Assembly: GCA_002104905.1 (NCBI GenBank) | Contig: MCFE01000037.1 | Span: 1 to 64,000 of the forward strand | Reading direction: 5' to 3' | Length of the DNA stretch: 64,000 nucleotides | Origin: Basidiobolus meristosporus CBS 931.73 | Taxonomy: Eukaryota > Fungi > Basidiobolomycota | Shown: piece after piece, positions 8,947-59,390 of the stretch | Layout of the letters: every line of letters starts with the position of its first letter | How positions within the stretch are numbered: the stretch's first letter is position 1 | The notes under the pieces: generated by a model | The model's input: only the letters and a program-made list of their open reading frames with translations | Told to the model about the DNA's origin: nothing | The model's database searches: none | Position numbers and translations under genes: made by a program

Positions 8947-9127
8947 GTAGTGCAGTGCTAAAAGTTATCAGAGATTTCAATGCTAGCATGGTGAAAGCAC
9001 TCTATAGCAGTGCTAAAAGTTATCAGAGATTTCAATGCTAGCATGGGTGAAAAGCACTATACATAGTAGTGCAGTGCTAAAATATCAGATTCAATGCTAG
9101 CATGGGTGAAAATCGCACTCTATAGCA
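8947..9127. repeat. Minisatellite, 3 copies of a ~55-64 bp unit
   Basis: Units GCAGTGCTAAAAGTTATCAGAGATTTCAATGCTAGCATGGTGAAAGCACTCTATA start at 8952, 9007 and 9071. Each contains the palindrome ATGCTAGCAT. Confidence 0.9.
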
Positions 9128-9400
9128 ATAATTGTTTCTAATGTTTATTACTATAGAATACAAATTAAAGGGTGATGGGTCGGAATATTTCTAGATACAA
9201 GGATACCGCCGGAGATCAAGAAATACTCTTCGTGGTTCAGCAAATTAATTACTAAAATGAAGAAATGGGAGCGCTGGGGAATGATAAATAGGGGTCGGAC
9301 TGTTGCGTTCTAATTCTAAAAGATGGAATTTTCAAAAAATTCGTACATTCGAACAGAAGAAAGGATGGGAATGTGCTGACTATCGGAATACCACCTCCGC

Positions 9401-38599: not shown

Positions 38600-39181
38600 A
38601 TGTCCATGTACGGTGACGAAGCATACAAGCTCGCAAAGGAAGCAAAGCGCGCCAGTGAACGGCTACCCCCATACAACGAAGAATTGGTGCGAAATGTATG
38701 TCGAGAGATTCGGATTCTTTTTGATGATCTGCAACGTGCGATGCAAGATAAAGAATATCGCACACAGGCTGATAATGGACGCCGTTGCGCTGCCCTTATA
38801 CAACATACAAGCCTTCGTCGCAACAAACGATGCTTACTTGCATATCACAAGCAACGCTTAGAGCGCGTGAAAGAAATAGCCTGGGCAATTGGAGAAGTAC
38901 CAGAAGACATCCAAGACAACCTATCATCCAACGAAATCGAAGCCTTCAAAGAGTATAAGCATATCTTGCAAGAATACGACCAACAATACCTTCCCATCAA
39001 TCTCATGTCGGATCTCCAACCACCCAAAGACCTCTATATTGAAGTGAGAGTCCTTAAAGATTGTGGCGAGATTCAGACCGACAACGGAGCCATTAGGCTG
39101 GAGAAGAATAGCCAGCACTTTATCAAAAAGACAGACGTAGAGCGATTTATTGCACAAGGATACATTAAACACATAGGCTAA
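38600..39181 (+). CDS. PSF1: GINS complex subunit Psf1
   Basis: MYGDEAYKL.KE, LPPYNEELVR, RNKRCLLAYH..RL and PPKDLYIEVRVLKDCGEIQT; divergent from DIS3. Confidence 0.95.
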   Translation: MSMYGDEAYKLAKEAKRASERLPPYNEELVRNVCREIRILFDDLQRAMQDKEYRTQADNGRRCAALIQHTSLRRNKRCLLAYHKQRLERVKEIAWAIGEVPEDIQDNLSSNEIEAFKEYKHILQEYDQQYLPINLMSDLQPPKDLYIEVRVLKDCGEIQTDNGAIRLEKNSQHFIKKTDVERFIAQGYIKHIG

Positions 39182-40182: not shown

Positions 40183-41373
40183 GCTTGCTGATCATTTCAT
40201 TTCAACGCTGTTCGGGCGGTTACACAATTGGCTCCAAACCATAGAGATATCACCCTCACGCTTTATTACATATTTATGTGACATGACCACTCTCACCTTC
40301 TAATTCACACGTTTTCAAGTTGACCTTGTACTCGCATTTCCCACTATAGTTACATTGGATAGATACAATGATACTACTGATTATCGCTCCATTCGAACTA
40401 CGCTTACGATAAATATCGGAAGAACAGTGCTTAATTCAAAGAGTGACTTTCATCACTTGCCGGGATCCTGAAGCTGGGAATCCTAGTTGATTTTTGCCAT
40501 TCCTATTAGTCTAGGCCATGCTCATGACTAATGATTCCAGGCTAAGCTTGCCCGGATTGAGGAATAATTAATAGAGCTTTCAGAGTTCTTCAAAAGATTT
40601 TGACGTTATAGCTCGCAGGCATGAAGTGTGACCTGATAAGACTAATCGAGGCAATTGACTTGGTAATTGAAAAGTAACTCTATATCTCCAAACTCGCCCA
40701 TCATGATGATGAATTAGGACTTCCCCGACAGAACTGAGGCCGAGATTACAATATACAGTAACATTGATGTATAAGCCACACCAAATATATGTAAACATGA
40801 TATACGTAATCAGCAACTCCACGTTTATAAGACAAAATAGGAAGTGGCCGCTCTTTGGAAGTACTAGCGGAACTCGAAGAATTCTCCATATCGAGTACGG
40901 GGAAGAATTAATTTATTTAGACTAAATACCAACATACTAATTCCAAAATGAATATAGAAATGATCATCCGAAAATTTAAAGTTGGGTAATACCGAGCCAC
41001 TGCCGGAAAGGGCGATGAAAGCGGAGTAAATTGTGGTACAAAACGACTAATTCTATGTAACCACTCAAAATGCTCATCTTAATGCCTGAGCGAAAAAATT
41101 GATCGAAGCCGAAAAAGCTGTCACTGGTAACCATAAGCGTAACAGTTCCATGGAACCTATAGAAAATAATATATTTGGCTAAATTTGTCTGCCAAACGGA
41201 GTAGTAATTGCTTCAACACAAGCCTGAATGTGATACCAGACTACAACCAACGATTGGTAGATTACAGTCTGCGAAATATCATAACATGAATGCCAGAAAT
41301 GATTCAAAGACTTGGAAGAAGTATAAATATGATCCATTTCATGTAAAGCAAATCAGTTCTCTCAATTAACATT

Positions 41374-43059
41374 ATGGTTGCAATTAAATTACTATCCGCC
41401 GTTTCTCTCCTCGCCGCCACTTCCATGGCTTGGGTTTGGCCCTTGCCTGAGAAGATGGAAATCGGTGAGAGCATCCTGACCGTCAGACATGGCTTCGATA
41501 TCGACATCGAGGCGAAGTCCGGAAGAGACATCCTGCGCAGGGCTGTCAAGCGCTACAAAAAGATCATCTTCAACACTGGCGAGTTCGGTGACTTGTTGCA
41601 CCCAGTCACCAAAACTGTGTTCCCCACCCCTACTCCCAACGTGCCGATCCACGAGCCCATCCCCGAGGCCAAGACCACTCGCATCAAGGGTCTTGTCATC
41701 AAGGTCAAGGGGAAGAACACGAAACTGAACCTTGACACCGACGAGTCATACACTCTTGATGTCCCAGCTGATGGCTCACGCGCTGTCATTGAGGCAGAGA
41801 GTGTGTACGGAGCTCTCCGTGGTTTGGAGTCCTTCTCTCAACTCGTTCACTGGAGCAGTGATGTCAACCAACACCGCATCCCCATGGCCCCAGTCAAGAT
41901 CGAGGACAAGCCTGCCTTCCCCCATCGTGGTTTCCTCATCGATACCTCTCGTAACTACCTCCCTGTTGACGACATCAAGCGCATCTTGGATGGCATGTCC
42001 TACAACAAGCTCAACATCTTCCATTGGCACGTCATTGACCAGCACAGCTTCCCCCTCATGACCAAGACTTACCCTGAGCTGGCCATCCACGGAGCCTACA
42101 CCAAGAAGTGGATCTATGATGAGGATGATGTCCGTGAGATTGTCCGCTATGCCAAGGACAGAGCCATCCGTGTGATTCCTGAGTTCGATATTCCAGGCCA
42201 TGCTTACTCCTGGGGTCTGGCTATGCCTGACATCGTCAACTGCATGAACATGCAGCCCGATTGGGACACCTATGCCGCCGAGCCCAACAGCGGACAACTG
42301 GACATCATCAACCCCAAGACTGATGAGGTTGTCCAGAACTTCCTCAAGGAAGTCGCCCAATGGTTCGATGACGACTTCATCCACATCGGTGGTGACGAGG
42401 TCAACATGAAGTGTTGGGAGATCACTCCAGGATACCCCGAGTATCTTGAGAAGCACAACAAGACCATGGAGGATGTGCTCTCCGACTTCGTCATCAAGAC
42501 CCACAAATGGGTCCGTGAGAACAACAAGACCCCCATCACCTGGCAAGAGGCCCTCACCAGTCACAACATCTCCATGGAGAAGGATGTTGCCGTCCAAGTA
42601 TGGCTCAGCCCTGAGGATGCTATTGATGTTGTCCGTGCTGGACACAGAGTGATTTCATCCAGCTATGAAAGATGGTATCTTGACTGCGGTCACGGTGGCT
42701 GGATCAGTGACAACGAAGGCAACTCGTGGTGCGATCCCTTCAAGAGCTGGCAAAAGGCCTACAACTACGACATCACAGCCAACATGACTGCTGAGGAGGC
42801 CAAGCTGGTTATTGGCGGTGAGGCTCCTGCCTGGGCCGAACAAATCGACCCCATGAACATTCACCAAACCTTGTGGCCACGTGGTGCAGCTGTTGCCGAG
42901 GTTCTCTGGTCCGGCATCAAGCTTGAGGACGGCACCTACCGCAAGACCGGTGATGTGTTCCCACGTATTCATGAGCAAAGAGCACGCATGGTTGACCGTG
43001 GTCTTCCTGCCGAGCCTTTGCAACCTTTGTGGTGTGCCCGCAACCCCAGAAATTGCTAA
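41374..43059 (+). CDS. Secreted GH20 beta-N-acetylhexosaminidase, copy 1 (allotype A)
   Basis: Signal peptide, HRGFLIDTSRNY, catalytic HIGGDE, WYLDCGHGGW, GGEAPAWAEQ. TATAAATA at 41322. Confidence 0.97.
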   Translation: MVAIKLLSAVSLLAATSMAWVWPLPEKMEIGESILTVRHGFDIDIEAKSGRDILRRAVKRYKKIIFNTGEFGDLLHPVTKTVFPTPTPNVPIHEPIPEAKTTRIKGLVIKVKGKNTKLNLDTDESYTLDVPADGSRAVIEAESVYGALRGLESFSQLVHWSSDVNQHRIPMAPVKIEDKPAFPHRGFLIDTSRNYLPVDDIKRILDGMSYNKLNIFHWHVIDQHSFPLMTKTYPELAIHGAYTKKWIYDEDDVREIVRYAKDRAIRVIPEFDIPGHAYSWGLAMPDIVNCMNMQPDWDTYAAEPNSGQLDIINPKTDEVVQNFLKEVAQWFDDDFIHIGGDEVNMKCWEITPGYPEYLEKHNKTMEDVLSDFVIKTHKWVRENNKTPITWQEALTSHNISMEKDVAVQVWLSPEDAIDVVRAGHRVISSSYERWYLDCGHGGWISDNEGNSWCDPFKSWQKAYNYDITANMTAEEAKLVIGGEAPAWAEQIDPMNIHQTLWPRGAAVAEVLWSGIKLEDGTYRKTGDVFPRIHEQRARMVDRGLPAEPLQPLWCARNPRNC

Positions 43060-43659
43060 ATATTATATCCTAACCTTGATTAGGGGCTTTCAGTACAATG
43101 CTCGTGTAGTACTCCCCTAGTTTCGTTTTGTATTCACATTGACTTGATATTTCTATTACGATTATATATAAATTCCATTCTTTACTGAAATCAGATTGAC
43201 GACCGTAAACTTGAAAAGCTCTGTTCTCAAGATACATAGAGTATACAGTGCACTCAAATATGTGAATCATGAAACATGAAATATACTCTTGAGACTAATC
43301 GCTATGGACTCCAACTGGATGAGAATCAAGCTGCTTGTATATATCACAGTTAATTTCTATTTTTGCAAGTGTAGCTAGTGTAACCAAGTTTGTCGGTGAT
43401 CCAAACTACGTCGAATTCGGAACGATTGTCAAAATAGACATATTTTTTGACCAATACGCCCTGGATGTTCGTTGCGACGAACTCGGAAAGGAAGTGATTT
43501 CTATTTCGGGAAGTAAGCGACTGATCAGCTGATTTTTAGAGTAGGGTGTAATTTTCCCGAATTAGTTATATTACGTTGCTCCAGATACTTCATTTCAATG
43601 GTCAGATCGGTATAAATATGGAGCTCAGTCCTAGGTGGTAATCAAAAGTTCTCATTTCA

Positions 43660-45345
43660 ATGGTTGCCATTAAGCTTCTCTCCGCCGTCTCACTATTCGC
43701 CGCCACTTCCATGGCTTGGGTTTGGCCCTTGCCTGAGAAGATGGAAATCGGTGAGAGCATCCTGACCGTTAGACATGGCTTCGATATCGACATCGAGGCT
43801 AAGTCCGGAAGAGATATCCTGCGCAGGGCTGTCAAGCGCTACAAGAAGATCATCTTCAACACTGGTGAATATGGTGATCTACTGCACCCAGTCACCAAAA
43901 CTGTGTTCCCCACCCCTACTCCCAACGTGCCGATCCACGAGCCCATCCCCGAGGCCAAGACCACCCGCATCAAGGGTCTTGTCATCAGAGTCAATGGTAA
44001 GAACACTGACTTGAACATCGAGACCGATGAGTCCTACAAACTTGACGTCCCAGCTGATGGCTCAGAGGCTGTCATCGAGGCCGAGACCGTGTACGGAGCT
44101 CTGCGTGGTTTGGAGTCCTTCTCTCAACTTGTTCACTGGAGCAGTGATGTCAACCAACACCGCATCCCCATGGCCCCAGTCAAGATCGAGGACAAGCCTG
44201 CCTTCCCCCATCGTGGTTTCCTCATCGATACCTCTCGTAACTACCTCCCTATCGCTGACATCAAGCGCATCTTGGATGGCATGTCCTACAACAAGCTCAA
44301 CATCTTCCATTGGCACGTCATTGACCAGCACAGCTTCCCCCTCATGACCAAGACCTACCCTGAGCTGGCCATCCACGGAGCCTACACCAAGAAGTGGATC
44401 TACGATGAGGATGATGTCCGTGAGATTGTCCGCTATGCCAAGGACAGAGCCATCCGTGTGATTCCTGAGTTCGATATTCCAGGCCATGCTTACTCCTGGG
44501 GTCTGGCTATGCCCGACATCGTCAACTGCATGAACATGCAGCCCGACTGGGACACCTATGCCGCCGAGCCCAACAGCGGTCAACTGGACATCATCAACCC
44601 CAAGACTGATGAGGTTGTCCAGAACTTCCTCAAGGAAGTCGCCCAATGGTTCGATGACGACTTCATCCACATCGGTGGTGACGAGGTCAACATGAAGTGT
44701 TGGGAGATCACTCCAGGATACCCCGAGTATCTTGAGAAGCACAACAAGACCATGGAGGATGTGCTCTCCGACTTCGTCATCAAGACCCACAACTGGGTCC
44801 GCGACAACAAGAAGACCCCCATCACCTGGCAAGAGGCCCTCACCAGTCACAACATCTCCATGGAGAAGGATGTTGCCGTCCAAGTATGGCTCAGCCCTGC
44901 GGATGCTATAGATGTTGTCCGTGCTGGACACAGAGTGATTTCATCCAGCTATGAAAGATGGTATCTTGACTGCGGTCATGGTGGCTGGATCAGTGACAAC
45001 GAAGGCAACTCATGGTGTGACCCACACAAGAGCTGGCAAAAGGCATACAACTACGACATCACAGCCAACATGACTGCTGAGGAGGCCAAGCTGGTTATTG
45101 GCGGTGAGGCTCCTGCCTGGGCCGAACAAATCGATACCACCAACATTGATCGTACCTTGTGGCCACGTGGTGCAGCTGTTGCCGAGGTTCTCTGGTCCGG
45201 CATCAAGCTTGAGGATGGCACCTACCGCAAGACCGGTGATGTGTTCCCACGTATTCATGAGCAAAGAGCACGCATGGTTGATCGTGGCATTCGTGCTGTA
45301 CCTTTGCAACCTTTGTGGTGTGCTCGTAACCCACGCAATTGCTAA
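43660..45345 (+). CDS. Secreted GH20 beta-N-acetylhexosaminidase, copy 2 (allotype B)
   Basis: Same motifs as copy 1, 561 aa. TATAAATA at 43611. Confidence 0.97.
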   Translation: MVAIKLLSAVSLFAATSMAWVWPLPEKMEIGESILTVRHGFDIDIEAKSGRDILRRAVKRYKKIIFNTGEYGDLLHPVTKTVFPTPTPNVPIHEPIPEAKTTRIKGLVIRVNGKNTDLNIETDESYKLDVPADGSEAVIEAETVYGALRGLESFSQLVHWSSDVNQHRIPMAPVKIEDKPAFPHRGFLIDTSRNYLPIADIKRILDGMSYNKLNIFHWHVIDQHSFPLMTKTYPELAIHGAYTKKWIYDEDDVREIVRYAKDRAIRVIPEFDIPGHAYSWGLAMPDIVNCMNMQPDWDTYAAEPNSGQLDIINPKTDEVVQNFLKEVAQWFDDDFIHIGGDEVNMKCWEITPGYPEYLEKHNKTMEDVLSDFVIKTHNWVRDNKKTPITWQEALTSHNISMEKDVAVQVWLSPADAIDVVRAGHRVISSSYERWYLDCGHGGWISDNEGNSWCDPHKSWQKAYNYDITANMTAEEAKLVIGGEAPAWAEQIDTTNIDRTLWPRGAAVAEVLWSGIKLEDGTYRKTGDVFPRIHEQRARMVDRGIRAVPLQPLWCARNPRNC

Positions 45346-45951
45346 GATATGTAGCAAGATTATATCATTTGTAAAAGTTACATATTTTGGTTATATATAC
45401 TTTGAATCATCTGAGCTCAGACTGAAAATAAATAATTGGTGTTATTAAAAATAACTTGTATATTTCTTACAATTACTCTAAATGAAATTATTGACCCGGA
45501 GCACTAATATATAATATATTTCTGGGCCGTGTAACCATTACGCTGAAGTATTGTGCCTTACAAAGAATGTAACCAATATTTAGAATTCCGATCGTGACTT
45601 GTTCGTGGGAAAATTTGATTTTGATCGGTATCGTACATTATGATTAATCAATCATTCATCGATTTCTTCCATTCGGATCATTCACCAAACTAGGAATTCA
45701 TTAATATATTCTTTACAGAAGACCACCTCCGTTCAAATCCAGTTTGATGAAATTATGCCTTCTCCACAAATCGCAACATTATTTTATTTCCCAGGCCTAG
45801 ATGTCGCTTTTTGGGAATCGATTTGGCCTCCGCTACTTGAGGCGATTGAAAAGAATGGATGGAAAATCCAGGGCAGCTGGACACTTTCAATTTAATATCC
45901 ACTGAGCACTATAAATATGAGGGTCAGCATTGAAATGTGAAAACAATATCA

Positions 45952-47640
45952 ATGGTCGCAATTAAATTATTATCCGCTGTCTCACTCCTCGCCGCCACTT
46001 CCATGGCTTGGGTTTGGCCCTTGCCTGAGAAGATGGAAATCGGTGAGAGCATCCTGACCGTTAGACATGGCTTCGATATCGACATCGAGGCGAAGTCCGG
46101 AAGAGACATCCTGCGCAGGGCTGTCAAGCGCTACAAGAAGATCATCTTCAACACTGGTGAATATGGTGATCTGTTGCACCCAGTCACCAAAACTGTGTTC
46201 CCCACCCCTACCCCCAATGTGCCAATCCACGAGCCCATCCCCGAGGCCAAGACCACCCGCATCAAGGGTCTTGTCATCAGAGTCAATGGTAAGAACACTG
46301 ACTTGAACATCGAGACCGATGAGTCCTACAAACTTGATGTCCCAGCTGATGGCTCAGAGGCCGTCATCGAGGCCGAGACCGTGTACGGAGCTCTCCGTGG
46401 TTTGGAGTCCTTCTCTCAACTCGTTCACTGGAGCAGTGATGTCAACCAACACCGCATCCCCATGGCTCCAGTCAAGATTGAGGACAAGCCTGCCTTCCCC
46501 CATCGTGGTTTCCTCATCGATACCTCTCGTAACTACCTCCCCATCGCTGACGACATCAAGCGCATCTTGGATGGCATGTCCTACAACAAGCTCAACATCT
46601 TCCACTGGCACGTCATTGACCAGCACAGCTTCCCACTCATGACCAAGACCTACCCTGAGCTGGCCATCCACGGAGCCTACACCAAGAAGTGGATCTACGA
46701 TGAGGATGATGTCCGTGAGATTGTCCGCTATGCCAAGGACAGAGCCATCCGTGTGATTCCTGAGTTCGATATTCCAGGCCATGCTTACTCCTGGGGTCTG
46801 GCTATGCCCGACATCGTCAACTGCATGAACATGCAGCCTGACTGGGACACCTATGCCGCCGAGCCCAACAGCGGTCAACTGGACATCATCAACCCCAAGA
46901 CTGATGAGGTTGTCCAGAACTTCCTCAAGGAAGTCGCCCAATGGTTCGATGATGACTTCATCCACATCGGTGGTGACGAGGTCAACATGAAGTGTTGGGA
47001 GATCACTCCAGGATACCCCGAGTATCTTGAGAAGCACAACAAGACCATGGAGGATGTGCTTCTCGACTTCGTCATCAAGACCCACAACTGGGTCCGCGAC
47101 AACAAGAAGATCCCCATCACCTGGCAAGAGGCCCTCACCAGTCACAACATCTCCATGGAGAAGGACGTTGCCGTCCAGGTGTGGCTCAGCCCTGCGGATG
47201 CTATTGATGTTGTTCGTGCTGGACACAGAGTGATTTCATCCAGCTATGAAAGATGGTATCTTGACTGCGGCCACGGTGGCTGGATCAGTGACAACGAAGG
47301 TAACTCATGGTGTGACCCACACAAGAGCTGGCAAAAGGCATACAACTACGACATCACAGCCAACATGACTGCTGAGGAGGCCAAGCTGGTTATTGGCGGT
47401 GAGGCTCCTGCCTGGGCCGAACAAATCGATACCACCAATATCGATCGTACCTTGTGGCCACGTGGTGCAGCTGTTGCCGAGGTTCTCTGGTCCGGCATCA
47501 AGCTTGAGGATGGCACCTACCGCAAGACCGGTGATGTGTTCCCACGTATTCATGAGCAAAGAGCACGTATGGTTGATCGTGGCATTCGTGCTGTACCTTT
47601 GCAACCTTTGTGGTGTGCTCGTAACCCACGCAATTGCTAA
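45952..47640 (+). CDS. Secreted GH20 beta-N-acetylhexosaminidase, copy 3 (allotype B, 562 aa)
   Basis: Same motifs, with one extra Asp (PIADDIK). TATAAATA at 45910. Confidence 0.97.
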   Translation: MVAIKLLSAVSLLAATSMAWVWPLPEKMEIGESILTVRHGFDIDIEAKSGRDILRRAVKRYKKIIFNTGEYGDLLHPVTKTVFPTPTPNVPIHEPIPEAKTTRIKGLVIRVNGKNTDLNIETDESYKLDVPADGSEAVIEAETVYGALRGLESFSQLVHWSSDVNQHRIPMAPVKIEDKPAFPHRGFLIDTSRNYLPIADDIKRILDGMSYNKLNIFHWHVIDQHSFPLMTKTYPELAIHGAYTKKWIYDEDDVREIVRYAKDRAIRVIPEFDIPGHAYSWGLAMPDIVNCMNMQPDWDTYAAEPNSGQLDIINPKTDEVVQNFLKEVAQWFDDDFIHIGGDEVNMKCWEITPGYPEYLEKHNKTMEDVLLDFVIKTHNWVRDNKKIPITWQEALTSHNISMEKDVAVQVWLSPADAIDVVRAGHRVISSSYERWYLDCGHGGWISDNEGNSWCDPHKSWQKAYNYDITANMTAEEAKLVIGGEAPAWAEQIDTTNIDRTLWPRGAAVAEVLWSGIKLEDGTYRKTGDVFPRIHEQRARMVDRGIRAVPLQPLWCARNPRNC

Positions 47641-48435
47641 AGATACAAGATGGGTTTTGCACATCTAATTGATGGCCCTCATTTTTACATTTGATGTTAA
47701 CAATTTCTTCATTCGATATCTGTAATAAAACCAACTTATTTATGTAATTGATTTGGCAATAGTATCTATGCATTATGTCAATCTACAATGATATTTCCGT
47801 TAGACTAAGAATCTTAGACACGTTTGCCATAAAAGGTATCTCTTTAAATTGCGGAGAACGGAGCACGGAAAATATTCCTCAAATGTATGGGTATCAAATT
47901 GAATTTAAGAGGTTTCTAGAAGTGTAACGAGTCTGGTTGGAAAAGATTTTCACACCATACGAGTGATGGAATGGCACCAATGGCTGTCGCACACAATAAT
48001 TCTAGGTTAGAGAGTACTACGCCACAAAAAGACCACATGGATAGCATTGGGAACTGAAATGGGTCATATGTCGCTTCAGCAGGAATACAAAATCACGTAT
48101 TAACTAAAAAAAAATTCCCCTCTACTAAAGTAAAATGGTATAACTAGGCTTAAGGCCATGCCTTATCCAAATCAAATGTGGAGAACAACATGTGGGAATG
48201 CTACTTGAAATTTTCAGTTAAATTGATAGCTAAATTTAATGATTATATAGTTCGCGATCGCTACACTAGTTTAAATTTAGTGAATTCCTTTGAACCCCGA
48301 CTGTTTATTGGCTGTATCACAGGTCATCAGAAGAATTAGGTCTCCACAAACTGATTCCTAGAAATGAAGAACATATAAATAAGTCAGTTATTGACGTTGT
48401 CTACAAATCACAAGAATCAAAATCCATTTACAATA

Positions 48436-50121
48436 ATGGTAGCAATCAAACTCCTCTCCGCTGTCTCACTCCTGGCTGCTTCTTCCATGGCTTGGGTTTG
48501 GCCCTTGCCTGAGAAGATGGAAATCGGTGAGAGCATCCTGACAGTCAGACATGGCTTCGATATCGACATCGAGGCTAAGTCTGGAAGAGATATCCTACGC
48601 AGGGCTGTCAAGCGCTACAAGAAGATCATCTTCAACACTGGTGAATATGGTGATCTGTTGCACCCAGTCACCAAAACTGTGTTCCCCACCCCTACTCCCA
48701 ACGTGCCAATCCACGAGCCCATCCCCGAAGCCAAGACCACTCGCATCAAGGGTCTTGTCATCAGAGTCAATGGTGAGAACACTGACTTGAACATCGAGAC
48801 CGATGAGTCCTACAAACTTGACGTCCCAGCTGATGGCTCAGAGGCTGTCATCGAGGCCGAGACCGTGTACGGAGCTCTCCGTGGTTTGGAGTCCTTCTCT
48901 CAACTCGTTCACTGGAGCAGTGATGTCAACCAACACCGCATCCCCATGGCCCCAGTCAAGATCGAGGACAAGCCTGCCTTCCCCCATCGTGGTTTCCTCA
49001 TCGATACCTCTCGTAACTACCTCCCCATCGCTGACATCAAGCGCATCTTGGATGGCATGTCCTACAACAAGCTCAACATCTTCCACTGGCACGTCATCGA
49101 CCAGCACAGCTTCCCCCTCATGACCAAGACCTACCCTGAGCTGGCCATCCACGGAGCCTACACCAAGAAGTGGATCTACGACGAGGATGATGTCCGTGAG
49201 ATTGTCCGCTATGCCAAGGACAGAGCCATCCGTGTGATTCCTGAGTTCGATATTCCAGGCCATGCTTACTCCTGGGGTCTGGCTATGCCCGACATCGTCA
49301 ACTGCATGAACATGCAGCCTGACTGGGACACCTATGCCGCCGAGCCCAACAGCGGTCAACTGGACATCATCAACCCCAAGACTGATGAGGTTGTCCAGAA
49401 CTTCCTCAAGGAAGTCGCCCAATGGTTCGATGATGACTTCATCCACATCGGTGGTGACGAGGTCAACATGAAGTGTTGGGAGATCACTCCAGGATACCCC
49501 GAGTATCTTGAGAAGCACAACAAGACCATGGAGGATGTGCTCTCCGACTTCGTCATCAAGACCCACAACTGGGTCCGCGACAACAAGAAGATCCCCATCA
49601 CCTGGCAAGAGGCCCTCACCAGTCACAACATCTCCATGGAGAAGGATGTTGCCGTCCAGGTGTGGCTCAGCCCTGCGGATGCTATTGATGTTGTCCGTGC
49701 TGGACACAGAGTGATTTCATCCAGCTATGAAAGATGGTACCTTGACTGCGGTCACGGTGGCTGGATCAGTGACAACGAAGGCAACTCATGGTGTGACCCA
49801 CACAAGAGCTGGCAAAAGGCATACAACTATGACATCACAGCCAACATGACTGCTGAGGAGGCCAAGCTGGTTATTGGCGGTGAGGCTCCTGCCTGGGCCG
49901 AACAAATCGATATCACCAATATCGATCGTACCTTGTGGCCACGTGGTGCAGCTGTTGCCGAGGTTCTCTGGTCCGGCATCAAGCTTGAGGATGGCACCTA
50001 CCGCAAGACCGGTGATGTGTTCCCACGTATTCATGAGCAAAGAGCACGCATGGTTGATCGTGGCATTCGTGCTGTACCTTTGCAACCTTTGTGGTGTGCT
50101 CGTAATCCACGCAATTGCTAA
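48436..50121 (+). CDS. Secreted GH20 beta-N-acetylhexosaminidase, copy 4 (allotype B)
   Basis: Same motifs. TATAAATA at 48374. Confidence 0.97.
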   Translation: MVAIKLLSAVSLLAASSMAWVWPLPEKMEIGESILTVRHGFDIDIEAKSGRDILRRAVKRYKKIIFNTGEYGDLLHPVTKTVFPTPTPNVPIHEPIPEAKTTRIKGLVIRVNGENTDLNIETDESYKLDVPADGSEAVIEAETVYGALRGLESFSQLVHWSSDVNQHRIPMAPVKIEDKPAFPHRGFLIDTSRNYLPIADIKRILDGMSYNKLNIFHWHVIDQHSFPLMTKTYPELAIHGAYTKKWIYDEDDVREIVRYAKDRAIRVIPEFDIPGHAYSWGLAMPDIVNCMNMQPDWDTYAAEPNSGQLDIINPKTDEVVQNFLKEVAQWFDDDFIHIGGDEVNMKCWEITPGYPEYLEKHNKTMEDVLSDFVIKTHNWVRDNKKIPITWQEALTSHNISMEKDVAVQVWLSPADAIDVVRAGHRVISSSYERWYLDCGHGGWISDNEGNSWCDPHKSWQKAYNYDITANMTAEEAKLVIGGEAPAWAEQIDITNIDRTLWPRGAAVAEVLWSGIKLEDGTYRKTGDVFPRIHEQRARMVDRGIRAVPLQPLWCARNPRNC

Positions 50122-50845
50122 TATTGGATGAACAGTATAAGTTAAAAATCAATGATCTTGTGACAGCTTGCTGAATATTAATAAATATACCCCTTTTGTG
50201 TACTGTAATAACAGTTTCATTTGTTGTGGGTTCGAATATTGAAATTTACGCTAGTTATTTACGATAAATACATTTGCGGGTGATACGAAATGGTTCGGCA
50301 ATATAGAGTAAATCTCAAACCATTTTCGTTGAAATAATGTAAATTTCTAACTATAGGCGAAAAGATTTCCTTATATGATCTAATTACAGCTCGTGGTAGT
50401 AAAATCATCCTGATGCCTGGATTTTATATGCCATCCAACCAAGTAATAATGCTTATACCGTTTGAGATGAATGGTAACTATTAATTAATATCACCCCTCG
50501 AAAATTCTACAAATGAAGCAGTGTCATCCATTCTAGATTGGAGATTACCTTGACTAGAATGGTTAGAAAAAATCATCCAGGAAATTCTATTTCCCTTAAG
50601 AGTTGTGGCGGGCGCGATCATTTTCTCACTGCGAATAAATATATATACCATTTGAAACTCAGTGATGGAAAATAGACATATTGTTTTTTAGTACATTGCG
50701 CGTCGGACCTAGAATGACAAATGAAATATAGCCAAAGTATTTTGAGAAAAGTCAGCGAGTGGAGTAAGAATCTTCTTTTAGTGTAGAATTTCCCTATAAA
50801 TAGCGTACGGTATTGGTATGCATTTCGTACAAAAAATTCGATTCT

Positions 50846-52531
50846 ATGGTTGCGATCAAACTACTTTCTGCTGTCTCCCTCCTCGCCGCATCTTCCATGG
50901 CTTGGGTTTGGCCCTTGCCTGAGAAGATGGAAATCGGTGAGAGCATCCTGACAGTCAGAAATGGCTTCGATATCGACATTGAGGCTAAGTCTGGAAGAGA
51001 CATCCTGCGCAGGGCTGTCAAGCGCTACAAGAAGATCATCTTCAACACTGGCGAGTTCGGTGACTTGTTGCACCCAGTCACCAAAACTGTGTTCCCCACC
51101 CCCACCCCCAATGTGCCAATCCACGAGCCCATCCCCGAGGCCAAGACCACTCGCATCAAGGGTCTTGTCATCAGAGTCAATGGTGAGAACACTGACTTGA
51201 ACATCGAGACCGATGAGTCCTACAAACTTGACGTCCCAGCTGATGGCTCAGAGGCTGTCATCGAGGCCGAGACCGTGTACGGAGCTCTCCGTGGTTTGGA
51301 GTCCTTCTCTCAACTCGTTCACTGGAGCAGTGATGTCAACCAACACCGCATCCCCATGGCCCCAGTCAAGATCGAGGACAAGCCTGCCTTCCCCCATCGT
51401 GGTTTCCTCATCGATACCTCTCGTAACTACCTCCCTGTTGACGACATCAAGCGCATCTTGGATGGCATGTCCTACAACAAGCTCAACATCTTCCACTGGC
51501 ACGTCATTGACCAGCACAGCTTCCCCCTCATGACCAAGACCTACCCTGAGCTGGCCATCCACGGAGCCTACACCAAGAAGTGGATCTACGATGAGGATGA
51601 TGTCCGTGAGATTGTCCGCTATGCCAAGGACAGAGCCATCCGTGTGATTCCTGAGTTCGATATTCCAGGCCATGCTTACTCCTGGGGTCTGGCTATGCCC
51701 GACATCGTCAACTGCATGAACATGCAGCCCGACTGGGACACCTATGCCGCCGAGCCCAACAGCGGACAACTGGACATCATCAACCCCAAGACTGATGAGG
51801 TTGTCCAGAACTTCCTCAAGGAAGTCGCCCAATGGTTCGATGACGACTTCATCCACATCGGTGGTGACGAGGTCAACATGAAGTGTTGGGAGATCACTCC
51901 AGGATACCCCGAGTATCTTGAGAAGCACAACAAGACCATGGAGGATGTGCTCTCCGACTTCGTCATCAAGACCCACAAATGGGTCCGTGAGAACAACAAG
52001 ACCCCCATCACCTGGCAAGAGGCCCTCACCAATCACAACATCTCCATGGAGAAGGACGTTGCCGTCCAGGTGTGGCTCAGCCCTGAGGATGCTATTGATG
52101 TTGTCCGTGCTGGACACAGAGTGATTTCATCCAGCTATGAAAGATGGTATCTTGACTGCGGTCACGGTGGCTGGATTAGTGACAACGAAGGCAACTCGTG
52201 GTGCGATCCCTTCAAGAGCTGGCAAAAGGCATACAACTACGACATCACAGCCAACATGACTGCTGAGGAGGCCAAGCTGGTTATTGGCGGTGAGGCTCCT
52301 GCCTGGGCCGAACAAATCGACCCCATGAACATTCACCAAACCTTGTGGCCACGTGGTGCTGCTGTTGCCGAGGTTCTCTGGTCCGGTATCAAGCTTGAGG
52401 ATGGCACCTACCGCAAGACCGGTGATGTGTTCCCACGTATTCATGAGCAAAGAGCACGCATGGTTGACCGTGGTCTTCCTGCCGAACCTTTGCAACCTTT
52501 GTGGTGTGCACGCAACCCAAGAAACTGCTAA
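50846..52531 (+). CDS. Secreted GH20 beta-N-acetylhexosaminidase, copy 5 (allotype A)
   Basis: Same motifs. TATAAATA at 50795. Confidence 0.97.
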   Translation: MVAIKLLSAVSLLAASSMAWVWPLPEKMEIGESILTVRNGFDIDIEAKSGRDILRRAVKRYKKIIFNTGEFGDLLHPVTKTVFPTPTPNVPIHEPIPEAKTTRIKGLVIRVNGENTDLNIETDESYKLDVPADGSEAVIEAETVYGALRGLESFSQLVHWSSDVNQHRIPMAPVKIEDKPAFPHRGFLIDTSRNYLPVDDIKRILDGMSYNKLNIFHWHVIDQHSFPLMTKTYPELAIHGAYTKKWIYDEDDVREIVRYAKDRAIRVIPEFDIPGHAYSWGLAMPDIVNCMNMQPDWDTYAAEPNSGQLDIINPKTDEVVQNFLKEVAQWFDDDFIHIGGDEVNMKCWEITPGYPEYLEKHNKTMEDVLSDFVIKTHKWVRENNKTPITWQEALTNHNISMEKDVAVQVWLSPEDAIDVVRAGHRVISSSYERWYLDCGHGGWISDNEGNSWCDPFKSWQKAYNYDITANMTAEEAKLVIGGEAPAWAEQIDPMNIHQTLWPRGAAVAEVLWSGIKLEDGTYRKTGDVFPRIHEQRARMVDRGLPAEPLQPLWCARNPRNC

Positions 52532-53242
52532 AGGGCATACCAAGATAATTTTGATATAGTATTGACTAAATTTCATGTTGTAAAGGCACATAATAGCATT
52601 TCAATAAAATCAATGAATAGCATCAATGTAGTCCCATTTTTGAATTAAGTCCTATAAATCTGGATTTGCAACTTATTTAAACGAATGAATTGTGACCTCT
52701 AGAATCCAGAATAATATTATAATGGGAGAGGTAGCACCAAGGAGCCATTTTACTGCACCCGTTTGTTACACGGAGATTTAATGTGCACACTTCACTAATG
52801 CAAGGACAGATTGTATAATCAGCTAGGATGAAGATAATGGCGCCACAGATACACGTTACTAACGCCTTCATTTCTCGAGAATTTCGAAGGAATGACATAT
52901 CAAATACTTGGAAATTCATTAGCGGCCTCAAAATCAGTAGGATAGTTCTCATTATGGTACTGTAACGTGAAAGCAATATTTTAATTTAACTCGAAATTGA
53001 TGCCAATACGATGCTTTTACCATTGGTAATATTACCATTGAAAGTTGTAGCCACATAACTGGCCTTTCCTTTTCATTCTACCCTGTTACTTATGGTTTGA
53101 TTGATTGTAAACTTCGTGCGTAAAAGAATTTACTATTGCGAATTTTCCAGCGTCCCGCGAAAGAACTGACAATATAAATACTCACGACCATGCCCAATAG
53201 TTAAAGCATACCCCATAACAGAAAACACCAACAGTAACATAA

Positions 53243-54928
53243 ATGGTGGCAATCAAGCTTCTCTCTGCTGTCTCCCTCCTCGCCGCATCTTCCATGGCTT
53301 GGGTTTGGCCCTTGCCTGAGAAGATGGAAATCGGTGAGAGCATCCTGACCGTTAGACATGGCTTCGATATCGATATCGAGGCTAAGTCCGGAAGAGATAT
53401 CCTGCGCAGGGCTGTCAAGCGCTACAAGAAGATCATCTTCAACACTGGCGAGTTCGGTGACTTGTTGCACCCAGTCACCAAAACTGTGTTCCCCACCCCC
53501 ACCCCCAATGTGCCAATCCACGAGCCCATCCCCGAGGCCAAGACCACTCGCATCAAGGGTCTTGTCATCAGAGTCAATGGTGAGAACACTGACTTGAACA
53601 TCGAGACCGATGAGTCCTACAAACTTGATGTCCCAGCTGATGGCTCAGAGGCTGTCATCGAGGCCGAGACCGTGTACGGAGCTCTCCGTGGTTTGGAGTC
53701 CTTCTCTCAACTCGTTCACTGGAGCAGTGATGTCAACCAACACCGCATCCCCATGGCTCCGGTCAAGATCGAGGACAAGCCTGCCTTCCCCCATCGTGGT
53801 TTCCTCATCGATACCTCTCGTAACTACCTCCCCATCGCTGACATCAAGCGCATCTTGGATGGCATGTCCTACAACAAGCTCAACATCTTCCACTGGCACG
53901 TCATCGACCAGCACAGCTTCCCCCTCATGACCAAGACCTACCCTGAGCTGGCCATCCACGGAGCCTACACCAAGAAGTGGATCTACGATGAGGATGATGT
54001 CCGTGAGATTGTCCGCTATGCCAAGGACAGAGCCATCCGTGTGATTCCTGAGTTCGATATTCCAGGCCATGCTTACTCCTGGGGTCTGGCTATGCCTGAC
54101 ATCGTCAACTGCATGAACATGCAGCCCGATTGGGACACCTATGCCGCCGAGCCCAACAGCGGTCAACTGGACATCATCAACCCCAAGACTGATGAGGTTG
54201 TCCAGAACTTCCTCAAGGAAGTCGCCCAATGGTTCGATGACGACTTCATCCACATCGGTGGTGACGAGGTCAACATGAAGTGTTGGGAGATCACTCCAGG
54301 ATACCCCGAGTATCTTGAGAAGCACAACAAGACCATGGAGGATGTGCTCTCCGACTTCGTCATCAAGACCCACAAATGGGTCCGTGAGAACAACAAGACC
54401 CCCATCACCTGGCAAGAGGCCCTCACCAATCACAACATCTCCATGGAGAAGGACGTTGCCGTCCAGGTGTGGCTCAGCCCTGAGGATGCTATTGATGTTG
54501 TCCGTGCTGGACACAGAGTGATTTCATCCAGCTATGAAAGATGGTATCTTGACTGCGGTCACGGTGGCTGGATTAGTGACAACGAAGGCAACTCGTGGTG
54601 CGATCCCTTCAAGAGCTGGCAAAAGGCATACAACTACGACATCACAGCCAACATGACTGCTGAGGAGGCCAAGCTGGTTATTGGCGGTGAGGCTCCTGCC
54701 TGGGCCGAACAAATCGACCCCATGAACATTCACCAAACCTTGTGGCCACGTGGTGCTGCTGTTGCCGAGGTTCTCTGGTCCGGCATCAAGCTTGAGGACG
54801 GCACCTACCGCAAGACCGGTGATGTGTTCCCACGTATTCATGAGCAAAGAGCACGCATGGTTGACCGTGGTCTTCCTGCCGAGCCTTTGCAACCTTTGTG
54901 GTGTGCTCGCAACCCCAGAAACTGCTAA
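53243..54928 (+). CDS. Secreted GH20 beta-N-acetylhexosaminidase, copy 6 (allotype A with B-type PIADIK)
   Basis: Same motifs. TATAAATA at 53173. Confidence 0.97.
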   Translation: MVAIKLLSAVSLLAASSMAWVWPLPEKMEIGESILTVRHGFDIDIEAKSGRDILRRAVKRYKKIIFNTGEFGDLLHPVTKTVFPTPTPNVPIHEPIPEAKTTRIKGLVIRVNGENTDLNIETDESYKLDVPADGSEAVIEAETVYGALRGLESFSQLVHWSSDVNQHRIPMAPVKIEDKPAFPHRGFLIDTSRNYLPIADIKRILDGMSYNKLNIFHWHVIDQHSFPLMTKTYPELAIHGAYTKKWIYDEDDVREIVRYAKDRAIRVIPEFDIPGHAYSWGLAMPDIVNCMNMQPDWDTYAAEPNSGQLDIINPKTDEVVQNFLKEVAQWFDDDFIHIGGDEVNMKCWEITPGYPEYLEKHNKTMEDVLSDFVIKTHKWVRENNKTPITWQEALTNHNISMEKDVAVQVWLSPEDAIDVVRAGHRVISSSYERWYLDCGHGGWISDNEGNSWCDPFKSWQKAYNYDITANMTAEEAKLVIGGEAPAWAEQIDPMNIHQTLWPRGAAVAEVLWSGIKLEDGTYRKTGDVFPRIHEQRARMVDRGLPAEPLQPLWCARNPRNC

Positions 54929-55536
54929 ATGGCTTACCCTAAATGCTTCGACCAGGTTATGTTGAAGATGAAAGCCGAATAAGCATCATGATTTTTGAAG
55001 TTTTTTAATAATTAAGTTATAAATCAACAATAACGGCAATGATATAAATAAACACATTTCCCTACTAATTGCAGACGTGTGAATATTTCCAGACAATCTT
55101 TTCTATTGAAAACCTTTCCCCTGGGATGTCGAGAGTATCAAATTCATATGGTGGCGTAATATGGTTAGTTTTTATTCACTCACTGTGATGATCCCAGATA
55201 AATTTAGTTAAAATCCTTGAGCATTTCATCCTTAATGGTTATATAGCGTAAGTTACAGTGATTAATACTTGCTATTTATAGCTTGATTAAGTCCCAACAA
55301 ATCCAAGTGATTTTCTATAAATTCGGTGAGCTTAAACTGCATTTGGATAGAATGGAAATTGTGGAGGTCTTCAGGCTGGAGTAGGATGTTGTTTTTAATC
55401 TGAATTACCTCCATTCATAGTCACATCGAGCAGCCATATATAGCACCTGGACCTTCCTAGATTCCAGCACGCATTCCGACTCCTTATAAATAATGCAACC
55501 AGGATTCTGTCTAGGAACAATTCATTTCCTCACTCG

Positions 55537-57222
55537 ATGGTTGCTATTAAACTACTCTCCGCTGTTTCGCTCCTTGCCGCCTCTTCCATGGCTTGGGTTT
55601 GGCCCTTGCCTGAGAAGATGGAAATCGGTGAGAGCATCCTGACCGTTAGACATGGCTTCGATATCGACATTGAGGCTAAGTCCGGAAGAGACATCCTGCG
55701 CAGGGCGGTCAAGCGCTACAAGAAGATCATCTTCAACACTGGTGAATATGGTGATCTGTTGCACCCAGTCACCAAAACTGTGTTCCCCACCCCTACTCCC
55801 AATGTGCCAATCCATGAGCCCATCCCCGAAGCCAAGACCACTCGCATCAAGGGTCTCGTCATCAGAGTCAATGGCGAGAACACTGACTTGAACATCGAGA
55901 CCGATGAGTCCTACAAACTTGATGTCCCAGCTGATGGCTCAGAGGCTGTCATCGAGGCCGAGACCGTGTACGGAGCTCTCCGTGGTTTGGAGTCCTTCTC
56001 TCAACTCGTTCACTGGAGCAGTGATGTCAACCAACACCGCATCCCCATGGCTCCGGTCAAGATCGAGGACAAGCCTGCCTTCCCCCATCGTGGTTTCCTC
56101 ATCGATACCTCCCGTAACTACCTCCCCATCGCTGACATCAAGCGCATCTTGGATGGCATGTCCTACAACAAGCTCAACATCTTCCACTGGCACGTCATCG
56201 ACCAGCACAGCTTCCCCCTCATGACCAAGACCTACCCTGAGCTGGCCATCCACGGAGCCTACACCAAGAAGTGGATCTACGATGAGGATGATGTCCGTGA
56301 GATTGTCCGCTATGCCAAGGACAGAGCCATCCGTGTGATTCCTGAGTTCGATATTCCAGGCCATGCTTACTCCTGGGGTCTGGCTATGCCCGACATCGTC
56401 AACTGCATGAACATGCAGCCCGACTGGGACACCTATGCCGCCGAGCCCAACAGCGGTCAACTGGACATCATCAACCCCAAGACTGATGAGGTTGTCCAGA
56501 ACTTCCTCAAGGAAGTCGCCCAATGGTTCGATGACGACTTCATCCACATCGGTGGTGACGAGGTCAACATGAAGTGTTGGGAGATCACTCCAGGATACCC
56601 CGAGTATCTTGAGAAGCACAACAAGACCATGGAGGATGTGCTCTCCGACTTCGTCATCAAGACCCACAACTGGGTCCGCGACAACAAGAAGATCCCCATC
56701 ACCTGGCAAGAAGCCCTCACCAGTCACAACATCTCCATGGAGAAGGATGTTGCCGTCCAGGTGTGGCTCAGCCCTGCGGATGCTATAGATGTTGTCCGTG
56801 CTGGACACAGAGTGATTTCATCCAGCTATGAAAGATGGTATCTTGACTGCGGTCACGGTGGCTGGATCAGTGATAACGAAGGCAACTCATGGTGTGACCC
56901 ACACAAGAGCTGGCAAAAGGCATACAACTACGATATCACAGCCAACATGACTGCTGAGGAGGCCAAGCTGGTTATTGGCGGTGAGGCTCCTGCCTGGGCC
57001 GAACAAATCGATACCACCAACATTGATCGTACCTTGTGGCCACGTGGCGCTGCTGTTGCCGAGGTTCTCTGGTCCGGCATCAAGCTTGAGGATGGCACCT
57101 ACCGCAAGACCGGTGATGTGTTCCCACGTATTCATGAGCAAAGAGCACGTATGGTTGACCGTGGCATTCGTGCTGTACCTTTGCAACCTTTGTGGTGTGC
57201 TCGTAACCCACGCAATTGCTAA
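55537..57222 (+). CDS. Secreted GH20 beta-N-acetylhexosaminidase, copy 7 (allotype B)
   Basis: Same motifs. TATAAATA at 55485. Confidence 0.97.
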   Translation: MVAIKLLSAVSLLAASSMAWVWPLPEKMEIGESILTVRHGFDIDIEAKSGRDILRRAVKRYKKIIFNTGEYGDLLHPVTKTVFPTPTPNVPIHEPIPEAKTTRIKGLVIRVNGENTDLNIETDESYKLDVPADGSEAVIEAETVYGALRGLESFSQLVHWSSDVNQHRIPMAPVKIEDKPAFPHRGFLIDTSRNYLPIADIKRILDGMSYNKLNIFHWHVIDQHSFPLMTKTYPELAIHGAYTKKWIYDEDDVREIVRYAKDRAIRVIPEFDIPGHAYSWGLAMPDIVNCMNMQPDWDTYAAEPNSGQLDIINPKTDEVVQNFLKEVAQWFDDDFIHIGGDEVNMKCWEITPGYPEYLEKHNKTMEDVLSDFVIKTHNWVRDNKKIPITWQEALTSHNISMEKDVAVQVWLSPADAIDVVRAGHRVISSSYERWYLDCGHGGWISDNEGNSWCDPHKSWQKAYNYDITANMTAEEAKLVIGGEAPAWAEQIDTTNIDRTLWPRGAAVAEVLWSGIKLEDGTYRKTGDVFPRIHEQRARMVDRGIRAVPLQPLWCARNPRNC

Positions 57223-57671
57223 GCATGATATTCTCGGGCTAAATATCAATTACCATCTTCATAAAAAGAATCATTAATTATATGACCACTCATTCTTGAG
57301 TGACTCAATATTGACTATAAGGCACTATTTTTGTAATAAATGAGTCGGTTCATTTTCAGTGAAATTATTATACGTGGGTTTTTGGGATTAAAGAGTCTGA
57401 TTCTCACACCAGGCGTTATCTTCCCAGTCTTCACAGAAGAGATACAACATGCTTAGCTTTGTTTTCAATCACTATCTACGAGCTAGAATACGGATACTAT
57501 AGAGTTTCTATATTGTGACCAGCCAGCCAAGGATTTAATATTCATTTTGAGGTAGCACTCAGTAGTAAAAGTGTAGAAGAGAAATATAATACAGATAGCG
57601 GTAGGTTCATGGTAACATTACTTTCTAATCAGTACTTTACAGTAGGTCCGACGGTTGCTTCCTATCCGTGA

Positions 57672-59390
57672 CTAGTGTCGGATATTCGGAACCAGGGAAG
57701 CAGTGAATAGAATGGCCAGAAGATTGATGAACAGGAAGATGCAGAACGTATAAGAGTTAAGCTTTTCGTTAAGCACGGGGGTGAGCAACCCAACTGAGAA
57801 TGTGCATCTATTGATGATCCAACTGGGTTAGTTCTGGTCAATACTTCCAGTAGAGTGCAAACTTACATCCAGCCGATGTTATTAGCCATCGAAACCACCG
57901 CACTGACAGCTGAGGTTGGCATCATTTCTGGGATCATGACTACGGTGATTGGGCCAAGACCGATGGCAAAGGAGCCTACGAATATGATGGCTTTAACGGT
58001 TCATTAGTTTCGAAACAACTACCAGAGGTACAATTATAATACACACCTCCAGTAACAACTGCAGCATCAATAGAATTCAACGAGGACACCACCAAAATTA
58101 TCGACGCAATTACCATTCCCACTTCGCTGATCAGGAGTAGGGTCTTCCTGCCAGCCCGTTCAATTACCATGGCAGATATGAATGTCATCATCATGTTCAT
58201 GGCTGCGATACCGACGGTGACCAGCTCCGCCTTTTGAGGGCCGAAAACTCGTTCGAAAATGGACGTTGAGTAATAGACGATGCCGATAATCCCCGAAAGC
58301 GGTTGAAAAGCGAAGAGTGTGATCCCAATCAAAGCCGCTTTTCGTAGCTTGTTGTCACGCAGGATCTGGAAGATGTTCAAAGGCTTCACGGTCTCAATAA
58401 CCGTTATGCCTGTTTCAAGGCTAACCCCTATCTTACTCATTCTAAAGGTATTTGAAGGGCTTTTGGGACTTTTGCAACTCACGGAGCTTCTAGGGCTCAT
58501 GGGATCTTTTGGTAACACCGGGCTCGCGCATGAGTTCCTGGAGTAAAGCGATGCGCGGGAAGGTGTCGGTACCTTTTGCGAATCCAGCATTTCCTGGAAC
58601 TCTTGCTCAATGTGGTATCCACGGCGTAATCTCTCCAACGAGGCCCTTGCCCTTGCCATATCCCCTTTAAGAATTAGGAATCGAGGTGTCTCTTTACAAA
58701 AAGGCAATAGACACAGCTGTAGCAAAGCTGGACCAATGGTTCCACCCATCAACCATCTCCATCCAGGGATGCCGATGAATGGGATGCAGAGTCCCTGAGA
58801 AACAAATATTCCCAGCATCTGGGAAAGCTCCAAGCCGATCCCCAATGACCCTCTTAATTTTTCAGTAGAGATCTCAGCTAGATAGGCTGGCACTGCCACA
58901 CCAACCACGCCACTAGCAACTCCTACCAACACCCGGCCAATAGTAAAGATCGGTATGGAGGTGCTCATGGACAACATCAAGCCACCAATTAGAAAGAGAA
59001 TGTTATTCCAGAAGAGGGTTTTCTTGCGGCCGTATTGAGCCGTCAGGCTACCAGCTAAAGTGCTACCTATTAGGCCACCGATTGCAAAAATCCCCACCAC
59101 GAATCCCCTGATGGTGTGCAGATAACAGCGTTAACACAGATTCTCAAACAGATATGGACACACACTTACCAGGTCCATGGGGTCATGGGCAGACAATCGG
59201 GAAAGTAAGAGGCGGAGTTGCTGTTGGGGACGCAATTTATAATTGTCCCCTGAGAAATATTTGGCACGCCTGCGTTGTAACCGGCATTGAACCCACCCAG
59301 GATGGCGGTGAAGGCGCAAAACAATACGTATCCAGAGGCCCTTTGCTCTCTAGAATCCAACAATTCATTGGGGACTGACATGCTTTTCAT
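57672..59390 (-). CDS. MFS sugar-porter (GLUT-like) transporter, 4 exons
   Basis: GGFNAGYNAGVPN, VGIFAIGGLIGS, YGRKK, GRVLVG, YLAEISTEKLRGSLG, ETPRFL, IERAGRKTLLL and GSFAIGLGPI. The predicted C-terminus VPNIRH* is unusually short. Confidence 0.9.

Follow-up and report, generated by a model that had tools for sequence, protein, structure and literature searches.

How can neighbouring genes remain nearly the same in sequence while the DNA between them has nothing in common? The question is raised by a stretch of 64,000 nucleotides (nt) from the fungus Basidiobolus meristosporus CBS 931.73 (assembly GCA_002104905.1, contig MCFE01000037.1, positions 1 to 64,000 of the forward strand; hereafter the window). 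Positions 41374-57222 hold seven head-to-tail, intronless genes of the GH20 beta-hexosaminidase family, all on the + strand, whose coding sequences (CDS) are 93.7-98.3% identical, with 153 variable alignment columns. The answer that we favour, with a probability of about 0.85, is that this is an old tandem array of independently promoted genes which evolves in concert by non-crossover ectopic (interlocus) gene conversion. All seven open reading frames (ORFs) are intact and uninterrupted, and each encodes 561 amino acids (aa) except copy 3. They are listed here with the haplotype groups in which they take part:

41374-43059, + strand: GH20 copy 1, intact ORF of 561 aa; the terminal and most divergent copy, 93.7-96.3% identical to the others.
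43660-45345, + strand: GH20 copy 2, 561 aa; haplotype group {2,3,4,7}; an exact protein match puts it at record position 43660.
45952-47640, + strand: GH20 copy 3, 562 aa, with an extra Asp codon after codon 199 (3-nt insertion, alignment columns 598-600).
48436-50121, + strand: GH20 copy 4, 561 aa; nt 295-590, a tract of 296 bp, are identical to copy 5 of the other group.
50846-52531, + strand: GH20 copy 5, 561 aa; group {1,5,6}, 98.3% identical to copy 6.
53243-54928, + strand: GH20 copy 6, 561 aa; a mosaic whose C-terminal half is of the {1,5,6} type and whose nt 340-575 are identical to copy 7.
55537-57222, + strand: GH20 copy 7, 561 aa, intact ORF.

The closest relatives of the encoded proteins are fungal beta-hexosaminidases. 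A GH20b N-terminal domain (PF14845, Glycohydro_20b2, residues 21-157, E = 4.1e-23) precedes the GH20 catalytic domain (PF00728, Glyco_hydro_20, residues 182-514, E = 9.3e-100), and HIGGDEVN is found in all seven translations; we take the Asp-Glu pair of its GGDE motif to be catalytic, as established for GH20 enzymes. The N-terminus, MVAIKLLSAVSLLAA(T/S)SMA, looks like a signal peptide and is held by purifying selection; the product would accordingly be a secreted beta-N-acetylhexosaminidase. The ratio of replacement to silent divergence per site (dN/dS) is about 0.1 across the array. A tblastn search of the 64-kb window finds these seven copies only, with no eighth or degenerate GH20 copy, and no other repeated genes were found in the window.

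Silent divergence among the copies is concentrated at the two ends of the gene. From 5′ to 3′, the proportion of synonymous differences (pS) runs 0.62, 0.18, 0.13, 0.06, 0.04, 0.17, 0.11 and 0.60, a symmetric, U-shaped profile with its minimum of 0.04-0.06 at codons 201-400. In codons 2-15 the mean pS by the Nei-Gojobori method is 0.62 (range 0.38-0.77), with a proportion of replacement differences (pN) of 0.03. All 14 degenerate codons of this segment are synonymously polymorphic, each using 2-4 synonymous codons across the seven copies, whereas in codons 16-551 polymorphism of this kind affects 83 of 504 (Fisher p = 2.9e-11). The change is abrupt, as nt 47-107, just inside the 5′ boundary, are identical in all seven copies. 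At the other end, every codon from 555 to 560 shows synonymous polymorphism (pS 0.60). The interior has a mean pS of 0.12 and a synonymous divergence (dS) of 0.06-0.22, about 5-10 times below the edges, whose silent divergence is at saturation and at least equal to that of the interior between species. The switch in homogenisation thus falls at codons 15/16 on the 5′ side and, on the 3′ side, within the stretch from about codon 555 to the TAA. In copy 1 the edges are located as follows:

41377-41418, + strand: unconverted 5′ edge, codons 2-15, the n and h regions of the putative signal peptide; the same 42 nt follow each ATG.
43036-43056, + strand: partly unconverted 3′ edge, codons 555-561; at the equivalent position in all seven copies.

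An earlier note on this DNA, made from the letters alone, had expected dS to be uneven along the CDS, high at the start and low inside, and the U-shaped profile agrees with this. Its description of the boundaries needs some revision. The eroded 5′ edge is real, although it extends over 15 codons (nt 4-45) rather than the first 12 or so. Interiors said to be near-identical even at synonymous sites are indeed homogenised relative to the edges, yet still carry a dS of 0.06-0.22. Identity was said to end at the TAA; none is found beyond it, but decay starts about 20 nt before the stop codon, a second edge that had been missed. Because both edges and spacers are saturated, what the note called the true, ancient divergence cannot be dated. 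The short sequences that it had quoted, the 3′ flanks after the seven TAAs and four sets of 5′ codons, are correct.

Base composition also differs along the gene. Third codon positions of the converted interior have a guanine-plus-cytosine content (GC3) of 0.67-0.69; codons 2-15 reach about 0.52 and the last ten codons about 0.56, these edges being a small sample of differing amino-acid composition. Neighbouring genes mostly have a GC3 of 0.36-0.60, below the array interior. The contrast fits GC-biased gene conversion or an expression-linked codon bias.

Outside the ORFs, the copies have hardly anything in common. The six spacers differ in length and have a GC content of 0.33-0.37, vs. 0.54 in the ORFs. 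The features outside the coding sequence are:

41322-41329, + strand: TATAAATA box of copy 1, at -52 from the ATG, one of seven.
43060-43659, no strand: spacer 1-2, 600 bp, unique, GC 0.37; TATAAATA at 43611-43618.
45346-45951, no strand: spacer 2-3, 606 bp, unique; AATAAA at 45427, TATAAATA at 45910-45917.
47641-48435, no strand: spacer 3-4, 795 bp, unique; AATAAA at 47724, TATAAATA at 48374-48381.
50122-50845, no strand: spacer 4-5, 724 bp, unique; AATAAA at 50180, TATAAATA at 50795-50802.
52532-53242, no strand: spacer 5-6, 711 bp, unique; AATAAA at 52603, TATAAATA at 53173-53180.
54929-55536, no strand: spacer 6-7, 608 bp, unique; AATAAA at 55047, TATAAATA at 55485-55492.

Comparison of the spacers with one another by blastn (word size 7) gives no match better than E = 0.01, and in local alignment they score just like shuffled sequence (mean z 0.4), the sole exception being one 18-nt match (z 5) that joins spacers 1-2 and 4-5. 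The two outer flanks of the array show no significant similarity to each other or to the six spacers. Spacers of 600-800 bp without alignable sequence had been described before, and both tests bear this out. Apart from the 18-nt match, the spacers share no motifs above shuffled expectation other than the TATA box and the poly(A) signal. The TATA box, TATAAATA, lies 42-70 nt upstream of the ATG in all seven copies, and seven of the eight + strand occurrences of this octamer in the window are the array promoter positions. AATAAA follows the stop codon by 59-119 nt in six of the seven copies. Because these signals recur copy by copy at similar distances, every copy is its own transcription unit with a private TATA box and poly(A) signal. 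The transcripts would then have untranslated regions (UTRs) unique to each copy, the 5′ one short, with a few tens of nt, and the 3′ one at least about 60-120 nt in length.

The head-to-tail layout and the roughly regular period of 2.3-2.5 kb recall arrays of the ribosomal DNA (rDNA) type, which also evolve in concert, and would suit unequal crossing-over that homogenises entire repeat units. However, rDNA spacers are homogenised together with the genes, whereas those of Basidiobolus share nothing. Unequal events within the ORF duplicate the intervening spacer, and no pair among the six spacers and both flanks is significantly similar. We therefore regard this account as very improbable. Since no spacer is duplicated, no expansion by unequal crossing-over can have survived from the time after the spacers diverged.

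The coding interior itself is a mosaic. The pairwise homoplasy index (PHI) is significant by permutation (p = 0.001), incompatibility affects 42% of the pairs of informative sites, and the Hudson-Kaplan minimum number of recombination events (Rm) is at least 17. The split of {1,5,6} from {2,3,4,7} has 33 supporting sites, which are clustered in short dense patches, and the conflicting groupings {1,5}, {1,6}, {5,6}, {1,2} and {1,2,3} find support as well. A GENECONV-like permutation test identifies significant identical tracts that cross the two groups, between copies 4 and 5 (nt 295-590), 6 and 7 (nt 340-575) and 2 and 5 (nt 341-443), together with a 620-bp tract shared by copies 5 and 6 (nt 922-1541). 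Shared tracts are thus about 100-600 bp long, and the mapping of tracts, which had been named as a check on conversion, reveals a recombinant interior with significant sharing between otherwise distant copies. At nt 320-385, copy 1 is outgroup-like and the other six copies carry a common derived haplotype; these include copies 5 and 6, which group with copy 1 outside this segment. A derived haplotype present in both groups is what spread by conversion looks like.

The patches that separate the two groups lie at CDS nt 207-220, 1134-1152, 1353-1367, 1476-1494 and 1629-1677. They mix silent and replacement changes (e.g., PMNIHQ vs. TTNIDR, LPAEP vs. IRAVP), and from copy 1 to copy 7 the two haplotype types interleave as a b b b a a b. 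The patches are islands that resist homogenisation and possibly correspond to two maintained enzyme variants.

A second GH20 array (array B, locus L001) is present in B. meristosporus on MCFE01000088.1 (record positions 108224-129831, reversed), with about 72% protein identity to the window array, or type A. Its intact copies lie at L001 2674-4362 and 9920-11608. At 1107-1977 lies a broken copy with an internal deletion and a stop; a frameshift near codon 12 interrupts the copy at 5147-6837, and that at 7825-9513 is more diverged (87%) and contains stops, its longest ORF being 282 aa. Public gene models bridge these breaks by fusion or splicing, and a fused model of 1061 aa is among those of this array. 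The array extends past locus L001, so the copies listed are a lower bound.

Basidiobolus ranarum (GCA_040143965.1) carries both array types. Its locus L002 contains the end of one type-A copy and, after a spacer of 849 bp (L002:1543-2391), the beginning of a second; L003 overlaps this second copy with 111/111 identities and is most likely its continuation, and L004 is a type-B array. In all four arrays, two per species, GH20 genes stand in tandem, homology runs from ATG to stop codon, and the spacers cannot be aligned. Type A has at least two adjacent copies in B. ranarum; these two are 92.5-96% identical to one another and 81-83% identical to every window copy, vs. 94-98% within the window array. 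In a maximum-likelihood tree, types A and B split first and the copies then cluster by species with 98-100% support, as the earlier note had anticipated for ORFs that are rewritten within each genome. The seven window copies form a single clade (100/100 support), apart from the two type-A copies of B. ranarum.

The spacers retain no comparable signal. The B. ranarum spacer L002:1543-2391 has no match in the window and only chance-level matches in L001 and L004, and the spacers of L004 do not align with those of L001. Because neutral DNA is saturated between the species (dS about 1), spacers cannot be matched by array position. Over codons 2-15, a B. ranarum copy shares 28-31 of 42 nt with each of the seven window copies and has no preferred partner, 14 codons being too few for orthology. 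In age, the duplications can be placed only at saturation or beyond, about as old as the species split or older. Tandem arrangement and similar spacing are common to both species, so the parsimonious reading is that the ancestor shared by B. meristosporus and B. ranarum already had an array.

These comparisons bear on two accounts that do without conversion. Purifying selection and codon bias alone might keep the copies alike, and both the low dN/dS of about 0.1 and an interior GC3 of 0.68, above most neighbouring genes, are in favour of this. Between species, however, interior dS is about 1.0-1.1 (pS 0.55-0.58), so that synonymous sites are free to change, and codon bias is thereby excluded as the cause of identity. 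Codons 2-15 likewise differ in their choice of synonymous codons among copies, and mosaic tracts and incompatible sites require exchange; the chance that no exchange took place is negligible. Alternatively, the array could be young, arising by recent duplications of the ORF only, or of whole units whose spacers were later replaced. An interior dS of just 0.06-0.22 would agree with this, and clustering by species is also expected from independent recent expansions. Yet every copy is equipped with a TATA box and a poly(A) signal of its own, similarly spaced within otherwise unrelated sequence, similarity is gone within 0-1 nt of the ATG and the TAA with no residual flank, and codons 2-15 and 555-560, which lie within the supposed duplicated unit, are saturated. 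The interior mosaic with its incompatible partitions is not what such an origin leaves behind, and the pattern would need four independent origins. A young array is therefore scarcely more credible than the absence of exchange.

Gene conversion limited to the ORF could proceed as follows. Purifying selection on the protein would preserve enough identity between ORFs for a break to be repaired off a paralogous copy, while the unconstrained spacers would have lost all homology. Strand invasion, heteroduplex extension and resolution require homology on either side; tracts would thus concentrate in the middle of the gene, thin out toward its ends and halt at the heterologous flanks. The U-shaped profile may be explained in this way, because the centre would be covered most often. 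Once mismatched, the outermost codons (roughly the first 45 nt and the last 20 nt of the CDS) would have escaped correction, and their silent sites would have drifted to saturation as selection held the residues of the signal peptide and the C-terminus. Selection against the overwriting of copy-specific promoters, as proposed for the mammalian KRTAP1 genes, may help to sharpen the boundary. The central proposal of the earlier note, old duplicates with conversion confined to the ORF, is supported by the U-shaped dS, the unalignable spacers, the mosaic interior, the saturated edges and the clustering by species.

Several points weigh against this picture of an old array under ORF-limited conversion, or at least restrict it. 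In array B, whose intact copies are 95-98% identical, identity extends all the way to the ATG and no 5′ edge is eroded, whereas in the window array, where no copy is broken, the edges are eroded. The 45-nt edge must therefore be contingent rather than a fixed property of the machinery, and the view that tracts cannot reach the edges does not hold as a mechanical rule. Either mechanics or selection may have caused the boundary to creep inward. The duplications may predate the split of B. meristosporus and B. ranarum, but parallel expansions in the four arrays, unparsimonious as they are, would produce a similar clustering. Finally, 153 variable sites and a dS of up to 0.22 show that homogenisation of the interior is only moderate, and for this reason conversion is better seen as episodic than as the continual rewriting that had been proposed.

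Array B also gives weight to the idea that selection, and not a mechanical limit of homology, sets the sharp boundary of the ORF: homogeneity of the enzyme would be favoured and conversions that overwrite promoters or UTRs would be removed. In array B, copies with 95-98% identity switch exactly at the ATG and TAA, which is sharper than simple erosion of the edges predicts. Promoter regions in the window are private, with only the TATA box in common, and would allow copy-specific regulation; selection of this kind has been argued for by the authors of the KRTAP1 study (10.1101/282418). On the other hand, the spacers are now without homology, so conversion there is mechanically impossible regardless of selection. 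Regulatory selection leaves the silent drift within codons 2-15 and 555-560 unexplained. That selection rather than the limit of homology sets the boundary is, on balance, unlikely.

Exchange templated by complementary DNA (cDNA) or transcript RNA of a paralogue, the speculative alternative of the earlier note, would limit homogenisation to transcribed, intron-free sequence. The genes are intronless and homology is restricted to the ORF; since heterologous UTRs would be clipped at homologous integration, the boundaries alone do not suffice against this route. Yet the inferred 5′ and 3′ UTRs share nothing between copies, the 5′ limit lies 45 nt inside the ORF, and neither poly(A) remnants nor an A-run are found after the stops. 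Furthermore, the profile is a symmetric U and is not lowest at the 3′ end, as cDNA primed on poly(A) would give. With UTRs that were not homogenised and no 3′ bias, the route is disfavoured and we give it a slim chance. Because coding-exact homogenisation recurs in the second GH20 array, a lineage-specific process in Basidiobolus might also be imagined, in which RNA- or cDNA-templated repair guided by transcripts rewrites expressed ORFs only, in place of ordinary ectopic conversion from DNA to DNA; this too is a long shot.

Concerted evolution limited to the coding region has been known for decades, and the window array is an unusually clean further case, not a new process. In mammals, the KRTAP1 genes are tandem, single-exon genes that undergo gene conversion in short tracts, and a cDNA route was rejected there by the same argument, since UTRs do not hitch-hike (Zhou et al., 10.1101/282418). 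The Basidiobolus array resembles KRTAP1 in its tandem single-exon genes and coding-only concerted evolution, and has seven genes in place of four. KRTAP1 flanks can be aligned across species and give a tree by position, whereas the Basidiobolus flanks are saturated. In contrast to KRTAP1, the boundary lies 45 nt (5′) and about 20 nt (3′) inside the ORF, which provides an internal yardstick of unconverted divergence. For the Amy genes of Drosophila (work of 1991; Shibata and Yamazaki, 1995), a review describes a concerted pattern in the coding region only and flanks that evolve independently, with paralogues within a species closer than orthologues between species (PMC3924832), as in Basidiobolus. 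The Amy genes are an inverted pair in an animal, whereas the present array has seven direct copies in an early-diverging fungus. Yeast paralogues also retain ORF homology with no more than 0-10 bp of flank homology (PMC2728529). As in Amy and KRTAP1, closeness within the genome, unhomogenised flanks and mosaic tracts are all found in the window array. No paper on Basidiobolus hexosaminidase arrays was found in the literature.

The array has particular merits as a study object: seven copies, fully saturated spacers, two eroded edges as a yardstick, and replication in a second array and a second species. The rate of conversion relative to mutation, tract lengths, the U-shaped effect of position and the creep of the boundary can all be read from a single 16-kb locus. 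A low dS between tandem paralogues of Basidiobolus should not be taken as recent duplication, a caution that bears on claims of gene-family expansion in this gut-associated fungus and is also useful for annotation. The unique UTRs and edges may serve as tags for measuring the expression of each near-identical copy.

The eroded edge also helps to correct the gene models. Public models give 544/545 aa for five of the seven copies (P0001, P0122, P0123, P0125, P0126) and 561 aa for the other two. P0001 starts at Met18 (MAWVWPLPEK...), and the four further models are of matching length (544 aa). Judged from the substitution pattern, the true start is the first ATG and the 17 residues at the N-terminus do belong to the protein, because codons 2-17 are conserved at the protein level yet saturated at silent sites (pN 0.03, pS 0.62) and a TATA box lies 42-70 nt upstream. 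The short public models would thus drop the putative signal peptide.

The array is flanked by a GINS/PSF1 gene (38600-39181, + strand) on one side and a sugar transporter of the MFS family (57976-59100, - strand) on the other. The transporter (PF00083, E = 2e-60) apparently has introns and is convergent with copy 7; its placement suggests a locus for harvesting N-acetylglucosamine (GlcNAc) or chitin oligomers. Every GH20 copy also contains an antisense ORF of 289-290 aa (copy 1: 41776-42645, - strand) and several shorter ones, which most likely result from the codon composition of the sense frame rather than being genes.

Two further observations concern the relation of the arrays to each other. 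Within B. meristosporus, interior dS between arrays A and B is 0.82-0.90, below the value of 1.0-1.1 between type-A genes of the two species, though dN is twice as high. In two 90-nt segments, at alignment columns of about 601-690 and 1141-1230, the window copies come closer to array B, at 0.88, than to the type-A genes of B. ranarum, at 0.79-0.84. Common codon usage, saturation or rare conversion between arrays could account for this closeness. The invariant 61-nt stretch at window positions 41420-41480 (CDS nt 47-107) has the core ATG GCT TGG GTN TGG CCC TTG CCN GAG AAG ATG GA, which hardly varies in the second array and in B. ranarum, silent sites included, where dS otherwise stands at about 1. 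Its conservation may be due to codon bias, to an element in RNA or DNA or to a favoured site for the initiation of conversion.

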